DNA of 64,000 bases from Oikopleura dioica (lineage: Eukaryota > Animalia > Chordata), in assembly GCA_907165135.1 (NCBI GenBank), contig OU015569.1:9548001-9612000 (forward strand). Direction: 5' to 3'. The notes beneath the pieces were generated by a model. That model was not told where the DNA came from, did not search any database, and saw only the letters and a program-made list of their open reading frames with translations. Position numbers and translations under genes: made by a program. How positions within the stretch are numbered: position 1 is the stretch's first letter; every line of letters begins with the position of its first letter. Shown here in pieces: positions 14,553 through 20,457 of the stretch.

Positions 14553-15393
14553 GAGTATCTTGTTCTTGCTGATATAAAATTTAACAAGTGTCAGTTTCTG
14601 GGCAATGTCGGGTTGAACTGAAATACGAAAAATTGAAAGCGGGCTGTATCTATCAGGGGAATTAAATTACTCATTTATCGACTCCAAGACCTGATGCTTG
14701 CTCTCCCTTTTCCCTAATCAATTTCTAATAGCCTCGCGATTATTTCTTTACCTTAAAATTTACTCCACCGCGTAAGAAAGAGAACTCTTATTGAAATCTA
14801 ACTCTTTTTTGTTTTCAACTTTTACAAAAACAAAAGGCGTTCTAGGGCTACTTGGTTATATTTTTTGCCCTTTTCTATAATTGATTAATAAGAATATCAG
14901 AATTAGCGTTAATAGCTTTTTCGCTAAAACCGAATCTTGACCAGATTCTGGTTGTCGATTGCTAAGTTAATTACTGAAGCTCAATGATTGCCTGCAATAA
15001 AAACTCAATTCAACCTCTTCCCCGAACAGGAGGAGGAAGACTCGCAGAGTGGAATTTTCGAAAATTTTATTGTTTTTCTCGAAGGCATTTGAACATTTTT
15101 GAATGAACGTGAAAGAAAAGTGCACGCTTGAACAGACTCCGAGAAACTGTGGAAGATTTAGTGTTATAATAGGAATTTAAAACCTCAAAACGAGATCATT
15201 CCAAAATTTCAAAAATAGACTCGTTTGAAAAAGAAGGAGCGAGGCGCCGGTGCGGGCAAACAGCTTTAATTTTGGATATGTGTTGGCCAGGATTCTTTTG
15301 TTTAGATTAGCTTAATAAGGCAAGTATAGTCACGGTAAAACAGTGAGTCAAACAGTTATTGTTAGAAAGAGCAACATCCTGAGCGTAGATAAG

Positions 15394-16104
15394 TTTCGAA
15401 AAATGTTTTCAGGCCAAAAATCACTTTTTAACTGTTAGTGCCATCTTCACCGCCGTCTCAAACCGAGTCGAACGGTATATGTATCTCTTGAAAATTCTAG
15501 AGTTTCGGGTACTTCCGGTCAAATTTACGAAATTCTAGTATTCCACTGCCGTTTTTGATACAGATATGGTACTATGGCATATAGCATATCAAAATGACCG
15601 CTAGGACGTGAGGAGTGCAGGGGTTTCAAAAATAAGTACTTTTGCAAAGAAAAGTACCTAAAAAATTATTTTGTGATTTTTAGCACTAAAAATATCAAAT
15701 TTCAAGAAATTTTCGATTTAAATGTAGTTTTCTTTGTAGATTTATTTATAAGAGATAAAACTTGATTATCCATCTGCTTTCTGCCCGAAAAATAATAATT
15801 GATATTTTTAGTGCTAAAAATCACAAAATAATTATTTTTAGGTACTTTTCTTTGCAAAAGTACTTATTTTTGAAACCCCTGCACTCCTCACGTCCTAGCG
15901 GTCATTTTGATATGCTATATGCCATAGTACCATATCTGTATCAAAAACGGCAGTGGAATACTAGAATTTCGTAAATTTGACCGGAAGTACCCGAAACTCT
16001 AGAATTTTCAAGAGATACATATACCGTTCGACTCGGTTTGAGACGGCGGTGAAGATGGCACTAACAGTTAAAAAGTTATTTTTGGCCTGAAAAATTTTTC
16101 GAAA
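15394..16104. repeat. Long foldback inverted repeat (about 305-bp arms, 100-bp spacer)
   Basis: 15394-15698 is the near-perfect reverse complement of 15799-16104, with a few small differences. No ORF of note and no TSD found. Confidence 0.95.
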
Positions 16105-16112
16105 ATCATCCG

Positions 16113-19100
16113 TAGGGTTTTTCACGGGAACGGCGCGGCGCGCTCCGGGCCTTCCACCGCCAAAATCGAACTCTTACTTTTTATCAAAAATGAAAATTTA
16201 AATTATCAAACGTACCGTGGGCGAGAGATTTCACGACGGAGGGCGAAATAGATTGGGGCATTTGCGCGTGTTTTTCTCGTCCCAATCTTTTTGCTCTTTT
16301 TGGCGCGCATCTTGCGCCACGTGGGAGTGGGTCCTCCGCGAAGAACAACAACAACCCCCCGTCTAGAAACATTTTTCACAATTCACCTCTCTCAATAACT
16401 GACCTAAGAAACTTCTTCTTCCTTCAATTATTATAACTTTGATTTTGTTTTAATAATAATGAATAAACTTAATAATAATAATTTGTAAATAATAATAAAA
16501 GGAAATCTTTAGATTGAAAAAATAAATTCAAAACCATAACATTATTGAAAACTTTGTCAATTTGAATTTTAAAAACGATGGGTGTGGGCGGGGTTGGGGA
16601 CTGAGATTGATCACCTCAGAGTTCCCAGCCATTGTCAAGCCCCTTAAATTTAAAAATCATGGAACGGGGCTGAAACGGCCCGAAGGGCCGTCAAGCCCCT
16701 TAAATTTAAAAATCATGGAACGGGGCTGAAACGGCCCGAAGGGCCGTCAAGCCCCTTAAATTTAAAAATCATGGAACGGGGCTGAAACGGCCCGAAGGGC
16801 CGTCAAGCCCCTTAAATTTAAAAATCATGGAACGGGGCTGAAACGGCCCGAAGGGCCGTCAAGCCCTTAAATTTAAAATCATGGAACGGGGCTGAAACGG
16901 CCCGAAGGGCCGTCAAGCCCCTTAAATTTAAAAATCATGGAACGGGGCTGAAACGGCCCGAAGGGCCGTCAAGCCCTTAAATTTAAAAATCATGGAACGG
17001 GGCTGAAACGGCCCGAAGGGCCGTCAAGCCCCTTAAATTTAAAAATCATGGAACGGGGCTGAAACGGCCCGAAGGGCCGTCAAGCCCCTTAAATTTAAAA
17101 ATCATGGAACGGGGCTGAAACGGCCCGAAGGGCCGTCAAGCCCCTTAAATTTAAAAATCATGGAACGGGGCTGAAACGGCCCGAAGGGCCGTCAAGCCCT
17201 TAAATTTAAAAATCATGGAACGGGGCTGAAACGGCCCGAAGGGCCGTCAAGCCCTTAAATTTAAAAATCATGGAACGGGGCTGAAACGGCCCGAAGGGCC
17301 GTCAAGCCCCTTAAATTTAAAAATCATGGAACGGGGCTGAAACGGCCCGAAGGGCCGTCAAGCCCCTTAAATTTAAAAATCATGGAACGGGGCTGAAACG
17401 GCCCGAAGGGCCGTCAAGCCCTTAAATTTAAAAATCATGGAACGGGGCTGAAACGGCCCGAAGGGCCGTCAAGCCCCTTAAATTTAAAAATCATGGAACG
17501 GGGCTGAAACGGCCCGAAGGGCCGTCAAGCCCCTTAAATTTAAAAATCATGGAACGGGGCTGAAACGGCCCGAAGGGCCGTCAAGCCCCTTAAATTTAAA
17601 AATCATGGAACGGGGCTGAAACGGCCCGAAGGGCCGTCAAGCCCCTTAAATTTAAAAATCATGGAACGGGGCTGAAACGGCCCGAAGGGCCGTCAAGCCC
17701 CTTAAATTTAAAAATCATGGAACGGGGCTGAAACGGCCCGAAGGGCCGTCAAGCCCCTTAAATTTAAAAATCATGGAACGGGGCTGAAACGGCCCGAAGG
17801 GCCGTCAAGCCCTTAAATTTAAAAATCATGGAACGGGGCTGAAACGGCCCGAAGGGCCGTCAAGCCCCTTAAATTTAAAAATCATGGAACGGGGCTGAAA
17901 CGGCCCGAAGGGCCGTCAAGCCCCTTAAATTTAAAAATCATGGAACGGGGCTGAAACGGCCCGAAGGGCCGTCAAGCCCTTAAATTTAAAAATCATGGAA
18001 CGGGGCTGAAACGGCCCGAAGGGCCGTCAAGCCCCTTAAATTTAAAAATCATGGAACGGGGCTGAAACGGCCCGAAGGGCCGTCAAGCCCCTTAAATTTA
18101 AAAATCATGGAACGGGGCTGAAACGGCCCGAAGGGCCGTCAAGCCCCTTAAATTTAAAATCATGGAACGGGGCTGAAACGGCCCGAAGGGCCGTCAAGCC
18201 CCTTAAATTTAAAAATCATGGAACGGGGCTGAAACGGCCCGAAGGGCCGTCAAGCCCTTAAATTTAAAAATCATGGAACGGGGCTGAAACGGCCCGAAGG
18301 GCCGTCAAGCCCTTAAATTTAAAATCATGGAACGGGGCTGAAACGGCCCGAAGGGCCGTCAAGCCCCTTAAATTTAAAAATCATGGAACGGGGCTGAAAC
18401 GGCCCGAAGGGCCGTCAAGCCCTTAAATTTAAAAATCATGGAACGGGGCTGAAACGGCCCGAAGGGCCGTCAAGCCCTTAAATTTAAAAATCATGGAACG
18501 GGGCTGAAACGGCCCGAAGGGCCGTCAAGCCCTTAAATTTAAAAATCATGGAACGGGGCTGAAACGGCCCGAAGGGCCGTCAAGCCCCTTAAATTTAAAA
18601 ATCATGGAACGGGGCTGAATTTTAAGGGTCTTCCATGAAGGCCGGTCTTCCACCAGAAAAGGTCCTCCAGGGGTCCTCCAAGAGTCACATGATCAAGATT
18701 TTTCAAAATTATTATCTATTTATTAGTTAAAGATTAATTTATCTTAAATAGCCTAGGTTAGACCTTTCTTCCATCAATGGGGTCTTCCACCAGATAAAAG
18801 TCCTCCATCAGCCATGGGAAAATACTTGAATGTGCGCGAAATATTCAAAACCCCGGCCCGGGCCCTCAGACTCCGTCGTGATATCTCTCGCCCACGGTAC
18901 TAATTAAAGGTCGCAGATTCCAAATATCGAATTTTTATTCTATAAAAATGTCAAATTATGCCGAAAAATCACTTTTTGCACAAATTTTCTTACTTTTCTC
19001 CCGGAGTACACCAAAATACACCTCTGATTTTGAGATATGATTGATAATAGACCTTTATCACTTATCTCTCAAAAATTCAGAATTCAGCAACATTCAGCAG

Positions 19101-19329
19101 ATACTCAAACTGAGGGTTAACTAATCGGAAGGGCCTGGGCGCGCGCTTATTTACAGAGCGCCCGGGGAGCAGTCCGAACCTCTTTGCTCAAGGTGACAAA
19201 ATCAGGTGGTTCGATGCTGGAATCCGGGGATTTCTGATTTCGGTATTTTGGAATCAGCGGGTCAAATTTAGTCTACAGTGTGAATTTCAGAAATATAGCA
19301 TAACTTTGAAATTCCCGTGAGAAACCCTA
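16113..19329. mobile_element. Non-autonomous hAT-type DNA transposon (3.2 kb) carrying a satellite array
   Basis: 18-bp TIRs TAGGGTTTTTCACGGGAA (16113-16130) and TTCCCGTGAGAAACCCTA (19312-19329) with 1 mismatch. 8-bp TSD ATCATCCG at 16105-16112 and 19330-19337. An internal 30-bp inverted repeat lies at 16212-16241 / 18871-18900. No transposase ORF. Confidence 0.9.
16634..18619. repeat. Tandem minisatellite, 56-bp unit, about 35-36 copies
   Basis: The unit GTCAAGCCCCTTAAATTTAAAAATCATGGAACGGGGCTGAAACGGCCCGAAGGGCC starts at 16634, 16690, 16746, 16802 and so on. Variants differ only in C4/C3 and A5/A4 run length. There are no unique spacers. Confidence 0.99.
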
Positions 19330-19693
19330 ATCATCCGTATTGAAATTCTAAAGTTTCCTATAAATTAGCCACAAGATTTAACGGAAAGTGAGCTTGGTTA
19401 AACATCCTTTGCTAATACTAACCAATTGGAAATATTCGAATTTCGAAGCTTTGCAAAAATCGAACAAGAATTATCGTATAAAATTGAAATAAACGAAGAG
19501 TGTACAATTTACATTCCATTCAAGCTTCGCTTAATAGGGCGAGCACAGAGACAGCACCAGGGTTAACTTGCTTCTTTTAATAATATCATTGAAACGAGGC
19601 GTTAGTCATTTAGACTGCAGTCGAATGTTAATTTTTAAGAATTTATTTGACTTGAAGGGAAGCAATGGTAGTGGGGAAATAATATCAATAAGT

Positions 19694-20457
19694 TTATGAA
19701 ATGACGCACTTTTTCTCCTTGGCTTCTCGACCAGTGCCGTTGATAAGCGCCTCAATCTTCTTCACCGTGCCTTCGAAGACTGATTTGACTTTGGTGCCCT
19801 CCTTCGCGCTGACTTCGAGAAACTAAATAAGCCATTAGCATTGTTCAAAATCGTGCGAGGTTACCTGTGCATTCCAAGATCTAGCAATCTGCTGTCCTTC
19901 TTGTTCAGTGACCTGCCGGTTTCCGTTCAAGTCTGTTTTGTTTCCGACGAGGATAACGGCTTTCTGGGAGGAGGCCAGGGAAGCGCCGCGTTTTTGCTCC
20001 AACTTGTCTGAACACACAAATATTAAATCACGCCCTCGCCATATCTAAGCTTTACCTTTTATTTGTTTGACGATGTTGAAGCTTTCCAAGTTGTCTATCG
20101 CGTAAACGAAGACGAACGCATCGTAAACATTGGCGCTGAAGTCTTCTGGAATGAAGGAGTATTCGTCTAGACTCAATTACAGCTCTGTTGATGGTTTTTT
20201 GCTTACCCATTCCAGCACTGTCAAGTATGTCCAGCTCATAGATGGTGTTGCTGACGTTGAGGTTGTACTTGTATGGCGTGTCGATGGTGGGTCGGTAGCG
20301 CTCGACAAACCTCTCGTAGCAGAGCTATATTGACAGTAAGAGTCACAGCTAGTTTTTGTTGAAGTACCTGATTAACAAGACAGGTTTTACCAACGCAGCG
20401 ATTACCCAGAATAAGAATTCGATAGTCTTTTCTCACCACTCCGTCAATATCGTCCAT
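19694..20457 (-). CDS. RHEB-like: Rheb-like Ras-family small GTPase with CaaX box
   Basis: Spliced exons give GNRCVGKT (G1 with the Rheb-type Arg), YRPTID, DSAGMDEY, ILVGNKTDL, FLEVSAK and the C-terminal CVIS. Confidence 0.85.

Follow-up and report, generated by a model that had tools for sequence, protein, structure and literature searches.

Probable nesting of a satellite-bearing, TA-flanked transposon within a hAT-like miniature element of Oikopleura dioica

Introduction

Satellite arrays inside MITEs (miniature transposable elements with inverted repeats) and other DNA transposons have already been documented in DTC84 and the pearl-type elements, in Tetris and in the oyster. DTC84 of Donax trunculus and the pearl-type elements are tandem-repeat MITEs of bivalves; DTC84 is non-coding and consists of an arm, a central array of core repeats and a second arm, the number of repeats varies between copies up to five, a palindrome near the unit junction is proposed as a hotspot of length change, the flanks act as a "cassette" for repeats, and a microsatellite at one end of the array and a putative AA duplication complete the structure (PMC3879986). 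Tetris, a foldback transposon of Drosophila virilis, supplied a satellite (PMC4079207), and a satellite of Crassostrea gigas is found on Helentron-type non-autonomous elements as short arrays scattered genome-wide (PMC8268682). Known non-autonomous elements also include the hAT MITEs, for example the BniHAT families (PMC7385995), and the Tc1/mariner-derived (Stowaway-like) MITEs (e.g., PMC3814204). In this work we analyzed a locus at positions 16113-19329 of a 64,000-nucleotide stretch of the Oikopleura dioica genome (assembly GCA_907165135.1, contig OU015569.1, positions 9,548,001 to 9,612,000; hereafter the window), where an array of a 56-bp satellite is enclosed by two sets of inverted repeats. 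Very probably, one non-autonomous DNA transposon has here inserted into another, unrelated one, and the inner of the two carries the array.

Results

A preliminary description of the locus, made from its letters alone, had taken it for a single hAT-type transposon with the satellite as cargo, and the structure on which this rested was found again throughout. Terminal inverted repeats (TIRs) of 18 nt with one mismatch, starting TAGGG, bracket the region (two matches only in the window at ≤3 mismatches, with 0.06 expected by chance) and are abutted on their outer sides by an exact 8-bp direct repeat, ATCATCCG. Between them lie the 2-kb array of the 56-mer and a second inverted repeat of 30 nt with one mismatch (16212-16241 and 18871-18900; 0.00 expected in the window). 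The outermost G/C and the TA of this second repeat are target-site bases, and the remaining 27 bp form the TIRs of an inner, TA-flanked vehicle.

The assignment of the array to the hAT element is what did not stand. A search of the organism's own genome (64,281,565 bases in 19 contigs) with the left 536 bp showed a break in homology at the inner repeat. Bases 9-111 have their matches at one group of loci; bases 108/109-536 have theirs at another, comprising 13 copies at 94-100%. With the right 731 bp of the region the outcome was the same, so that on each side two independent repeat families meet exactly at the inner inverted repeat. At C1:15789309-15789846 and C4:12909866-12910412 the outer halves follow each other without interruption (genome search and alignment); in alignment, AAACG-TA-CTAATT of the intact outer copies L079 and L080 corresponds to AAACG-TA-insert-TA-CTAATT of the window. 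The single TA of the intact copies, against two in the window, thus marks an empty site for the inner element and a 2-bp TA duplication on its insertion. The seven other outer-family loci examined are all free of the 56-mer. The hAT TIR is missing from all 22 loci checked that are related to the array, of which 16 are full array-bearing copies other than that of the window and six are further loci. The further proposal that the array is mobile and has been seeded around the genome by transposition was supported, with the inner element as the vehicle, by 17 full, TA-flanked inner copies in unrelated DNA.

With the insert removed from 16113-19329, the outer element measures ~533 bp and is non-coding. 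L079 and L080 are 533 bp long and have 8-bp target-site duplications (TSDs) of their own (TTCATATA and ATAATCTA, respectively), and L082 and L083 are flanked on both sides by CAGATGAC and TCCATACG. In all, five of six outer copies show perfect and mutually different 8-bp TSDs, the sixth (L081) being offset by 1 bp. Genome-wide, the outer TIR matches 74 times (reversed control, 13 times) and is shared by size classes of ~533, 690, and 1000 bp. TIRs of hAT elements are short, about 10-25 bp, with termini of the consensus YARNG; the 18-bp TIR with its TAGGG start fits both features, and the 8-bp TSD is that of a hAT element. By these TSD and TIR features, on which its superfamily assignment rests, the outer element is classed as a hAT-like non-autonomous MITE, in agreement with the type first proposed. 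A foldback element of ~720 bp lies immediately to the left (window 15388-16110; arms 15400-15698 and 15799-16099, complementary at 97-99%); its right terminus and the hAT MITE's 8-bp target overlap, which makes a stack of three transposons at this place.

The inner element (16215-18897) is likewise non-coding, with 27-bp TIRs whose single mismatch is identical in all young copies. Sixteen full copies were found beyond the window, and all 17 are bounded by TA on both sides, with unrelated flanks beyond. Of the TIR superfamilies of eukaryotes, Tc1/mariner/pogo is the one characteristically marked by a 2-bp duplication specific to TA; both this TSD and the bounding TIRs are present, and it is on them that the inner element is assigned to the Tc1/mariner type. 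The family also includes a TA-flanked deletion derivative of 372 bp (L077, C4:13599786-13600157), in which the two TIRs and the right arm are preserved along with 44 bp of left arm and a partial unit.

Candidates for autonomous partners were sought for both elements. The hAT dimerisation domain PF05699 has nine matches in the genome, and no outer TIR was found within 1.5 kb of them at ≤4 mismatches, apart from a local short repeat at L093. The latter, a TIR-like 18-mer 400 bp downstream of the PF05699 match, is one of several local short repeats and has no TAGGG end, and L093 was rejected as an autonomous hAT; L086-L092, where no outer TIR is present, were rejected as well. The autonomous hAT with the same TIR that the preliminary description had looked to was therefore not found among the PF05699 matches examined. 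The domain matches of L086-L092 are identical in all seven (C1:636914, 641782, 732634, and 737494; C5:13847453; C4:380299 and 393172), and the two pairs on C1 are each spaced by ~4.86 kb, an arrangement that points to a hAT-like gene or element present in tandem or in clusters. For the inner element, two repeat copies of at least 3.2 kb and 99% identity (L095, C1:17028308-17031535; L096, C5:1319280-1322507) contain an intact open reading frame (ORF) of 639 aa with weak Tc1-like signals (DDE_3 at E = 6e-5, below the cut-off; SB100X at E = 4e-4; atlas feature matches up to 0.88; HTH_Tnp_Tc3_2) and may represent a Tc1-like transposon that was active recently. About 250 bp upstream of this ORF lies a 47-bp piece of the MITE right arm. 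In the stretches compared, however, L095 and L096 share no sequence with the inner MITE, and the predicted terminal 12-mer near C1:17,032,015 was absent among all 53 genome matches listed; the ORF was therefore set aside as a candidate for the inner element's autonomous partner.

The array in the window has a period of 56 and 98% matches (Tandem Repeats Finder, TRF), and its units are uniform in variant. A dimer of the unit folded as single-stranded DNA gives -28.4 kcal/mol, against -14.9 ± 2.6 for shuffled sequences (z = -5.1). A 7-bp stem, ACGGCCC-GAA-GGGCCGT, falls exactly on the unit junction, and in a second stem AGCCCC pairs with GGGGCT. It should be noted that the unit lengths of 54, 55, and 56 bp differ at homopolymer runs (CCCC/CCC, AAAAA/AAAA), and this variation may partly be Nanopore sequencing error. 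A search of Rfam with E up to 0.1 over 15400-19700 gave no match, and the 56-bp unit had no matches in a metagenome scan.

Array length varies widely within the inner family, from 5.7 to 50.7 units in 14 copies, while three older copies (L073, L074, and L076; 772-783 bp) have a single unit, at the same position in each and without the junction motif. A maximum-likelihood tree of the concatenated arms sets an old clade, L073-L076, apart from a young clade of 13 copies, within which three starred or near-starred subclades coincide with the unit variants A, B, and A'. This match between arms and units shows that arrays are inherited through transposition. Array length is labile: the arms of the window copy and of L061 are identical throughout 702 columns, yet their arrays count 35.7 and 14.7 units. 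Large arrays can also move to a new site intact, as indicated by L064 and L065, whose arms are identical and whose arrays both count 50.7 units, in different flanking DNA on either side. In L067 (C4:7274700-7278500) all 37 of the 37 units have TTC in the hairpin loop, with the stem kept, where the sisters L066 and L069 have GAA. This suggests an inversion of the loop by template switching at the palindrome, followed by spread through the array, and fixation across a whole array implies either contraction and re-expansion or strong homogenisation. In the old clade, L075 with 22.9 units is sister to the single-unit L076 (support 100/99). Because of this sister relationship and the array-wide fixation in L067, we lean towards regarding the single-unit copies as collapsed arrays and not as ancestors.

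Genome-wide, a 33-nt core pattern of the satellite gave 4,278 matches against none for the control, roughly 240 kb in total, and the left array junction, which occurs once per array, was found at 93 loci, in several diverged variants, against none for the control. The tabulated inner MITE copies hold about 340 of the ~4,278 units. A second carrier, family 2 (L024 and L028-L030), is TA-flanked in unrelated DNA and measures ~2.3 kb without its array; what it has in common with the inner MITE is confined to the final 130-190 bp of the left arm and a variant array of 1.7-20 units. No coding capacity was found in it (longest ORF 97 aa), and it holds internal inverted blocks of 21-bp repeats. Its termini begin CCGTTGCG and are related to those of the inner MITE, CCGTGGGCG, both being of CCGT type; about 10 such terminus pairs occur in the genome, mostly on C3. 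This contig (2.9 Mb) also has 29 of the 93 junction loci, ~10 per Mb against ~1 per Mb elsewhere (binomial p = 6.5e-17). Judged by size, C3 is presumably the Y-specific region and C2, the contig of the window, the X-specific region, and the ten-fold density on C3 would fit a build-up of repeats on a non-recombining Y-specific region. Separately, a satellite block of at least 4.2 kb, with about 60 listed units and one 0.9-kb gap, lies at C1:382903-387098; no TIR match of the inner family or family 2 and no canonical left junction were found nearby, and the block may be a free array or belong to another carrier.

Table 1. Features of the nested locus (window coordinates) and of the family 2 copies (contig C3).
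Feature	Position	Strand	Basis or remark
Left 8-bp TSD of outer hAT-like MITE, ATCATCCG	16105..16112	.	Identical to 19330-19337
Left TIR of outer hAT-like MITE	16113..16130	+	Starts TAGGG; common to several genome size classes
Outer MITE, left part, through the TA hit by the inner insertion	16113..16214	+	L020-L023, L025, L027 at 91-98%; collinear with intact L079, L080
Left TA TSD of inner element	16213..16214	.	17/17 full copies TA...TA; single TA in L079, L080
Left TIR of inner element, starts CCGTGGGCGAGAG	16215..16241	+	47 genome matches, 0 for control
Left arm of inner element	16215..16633	+	Last 130-190 bp are the fixed flank travelling with the array in other element families
Array, 35.7 units of 56-bp hairpin-forming satellite, variant A GCTGAAACGG	16634..18619	+	TRF
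Right arm of inner element, including right TIR 18871-18897	18620..18897	+	Comparison with other copies
Right TA TSD of inner element	18898..18899	.	TA flanks of full copies and empty site
Outer MITE, right part, including right TIR 19312-19329	18900..19329	+	97% identity to intact copies C1:15789408-15789846, C4:12909973-12910412
Right 8-bp TSD, ATCATCCG	19330..19337	.	Read directly
Family 2 copy L024	C3:635267-638411		TA-flanked
Family 2 copy L028	C3:1938378-1941507		TA-flanked
Family 2 copy L029	C3:893734-896861		TA-flanked
Family 2 copy L030	C3:1094287-1097414		TA-flanked

Discussion

In the course of events that we favor, a ~533-bp hAT-like MITE with TAGGG TIRs would first have inserted at the edge of the foldback element, duplicating ATCATCCG; later a TA-flanked element of the Tc1/mariner type, with 27-bp TIRs starting CCGTGGGCGAGAG, would have inserted at a TA inside this MITE and brought the 56-bp array with it. 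We infer that the inner family moves by cut-and-paste with the transposase supplied in trans. The array moves together with the inner element, and its length shifts quickly in place by slippage or unequal exchange, changes which the 7-bp-stem hairpin across each unit junction probably favors. Array and fixed left flank (about 130-190 bp) together appear to predate the inner MITE family; they are also present in at least one other TA-flanked family and at 93 or more loci genome-wide.

Several points weigh against this account or limit it. In the sequence examined, neither TIR was found on an autonomous element, and about 85% of the satellite units are in loci outside the carrier analysis. By sequence, a TA duplication is indistinguishable from insertion between T and A without duplication. 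L073, L074, and L076 can be taken as either ancestral or collapsed, with L075 and its 22.9 units nesting among them. The role of the junction hairpin in promoting slippage and length change, probable as it is, is again something that we infer.

Most room is left for a different history, in which the array was born inside the inner MITE family from single-copy sequence, L073, L074, and L076 are ancestral, and the other carriers acquired the array from the MITE. Three older copies with exactly one unit, at the same position and without a junction motif, are what such a birth would leave behind, yet we consider it unlikely. The 22.9-unit L075 is sister to one of these copies inside the old clade, and one and the same GGGCCG junction is found in L075, the young clade and family 2, which points to one origin and later contraction; the census of left junctions contains many more diverged variants outside the MITE; and the flipped loop of L067 shows that an array can shrink to very few units and then expand again.

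It is a good deal less probable that the inner element belongs to a TIR superfamily other than Tc1/mariner, or that it inserts between T and A without duplication, in which case the TA TSD would be a convention of parsing. The common terminus of Tc1-like elements is CAGT, and the inner element ends in CCGT; moreover, no matching Tc1/mariner transposase gene was found, and the Tc1-like ORF examined is without the predicted terminus. Nevertheless exactly 2 bp, TA, are common to the filled and the empty site, all 17 inner copies and the family 2 copies are TA-flanked, a TA-specific duplication of 2 bp is typical of Tc1/mariner/pogo, and neither the 3-bp TWA of PIF/Harbinger nor the TTAA of piggyBac fits the empty site.

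A wider proposal has a similarly small chance of being right, namely that the 56-bp satellite and its ~130-190 bp flank are a hitch-hiking module which has repeatedly entered unrelated transposon families otherwise than by simple nested transposition, for example by template switching at hairpins, and whose ten-fold pile-up on C3 reflects a transposon-borne satellite building sex-chromosome or centromere-like DNA. We know of no centromeric satellite identified in this chordate.

That the array lengths and unit variants are artefacts of the long-read assembly and not biology is very improbable: the differences in unit length do sit at homopolymer runs, and an assembly error rate estimated at 1.3% (PMC8008620) counts in favor of an artefact, but the reads (99% of which are below 42.8 kb; PMC8008620) exceed the arrays, at 0.3-2.8 kb, by far, the diagnostic substitutions are array-wide and follow the phylogeny of the arms, and L064 and L065 have arrays of equal length at different loci. 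Finally, a single hAT transposon spanning 16113-19329, with the array as internal cargo and the inner inverted repeat as a mere internal feature, is scarcely credible, since TIRs and a perfect 8-bp TSD do bracket the whole 3.2 kb but the other outer copies are 533 bp and array-free, the 16 further full copies with array units are flanked by TAs of their own and lack the hAT TIR, on either flank homology is broken exactly at the inner TIR, and the empty site in L079 and L080 refutes it for this locus.

What looked like a hAT element with cargo here resolves as nesting, and for annotation practice this means that TIRs and a TSD around an array should not be called a cargo-bearing element before nesting has been excluded. 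As two nested elements, the locus provides an unusually clean record of the spread and resizing of a satellite by a transposon, comprising an empty site, sister copies with 15 and 36 units, two independent 51-unit insertions and the array-wide fixation of a flipped loop. The tandem repeats of the assembly have been put at 1.4-2.6 Mbp (PMC8008620), of which the roughly 240 kb of this satellite make up about 9-17%, a sizeable fraction for a 64-Mb chordate genome.

Of the two nested elements, the outer one resembles hAT MITEs of the BniHAT type (PMC7385995) in its 8-bp TSD, short TIRs, lack of an ORF and several size classes per TIR, and differs from them in that no autonomous hAT with the same TIR was found in the sequence examined. 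The inner one is, like the Stowaway-like MITEs (PMC3814204), non-coding, bounded by TIRs and a TA duplication, and mobilised, as we envisage it, in trans. Those elements are typically short (<600 bp) and array-free, however, whereas the arms here total ~700 bp, the satellite adds as much as 2.8 kb, and no parent transposon was found.

The oyster carriers are reportedly elements of a rolling-circle type, whereas TIRs and TA duplications mark both carriers characterised here. What the oyster satellite and the present one have in common is their dispersal in short arrays associated with mobile elements (PMC8268682). With Tetris, the inner element shares the condition of a DNA transposon with internal tandem repeats that are also present as arrays elsewhere in the genome (PMC4079207); the repeats of Tetris are inside the long TIRs of a foldback, whereas here they are central and between short TIRs. 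There is likewise a resemblance to DTC84 and the pearl-type elements: a central array of variable copy number, here 1-51 units, lies between arms with inverted repeats, and a palindrome, here ACGGCCC-GAA-GGGCCGT, is found at the junction of the units (PMC3879986). The inner element differs in its up to 51 units, its 27-bp TIRs and its TA duplication, and has no sequence relation to DTC84; no microsatellite adjoins the array in the window, and the duplication is TA and not AA (PMC3879986). The organisation of the inner element is thus DTC84-like without making it a member of the DTC84/pearl group. The locus works in the same way as these documented arrays within MITEs and DNA transposons without sharing sequence with them, and adds one more case to those already linking transposons with satellite DNA.

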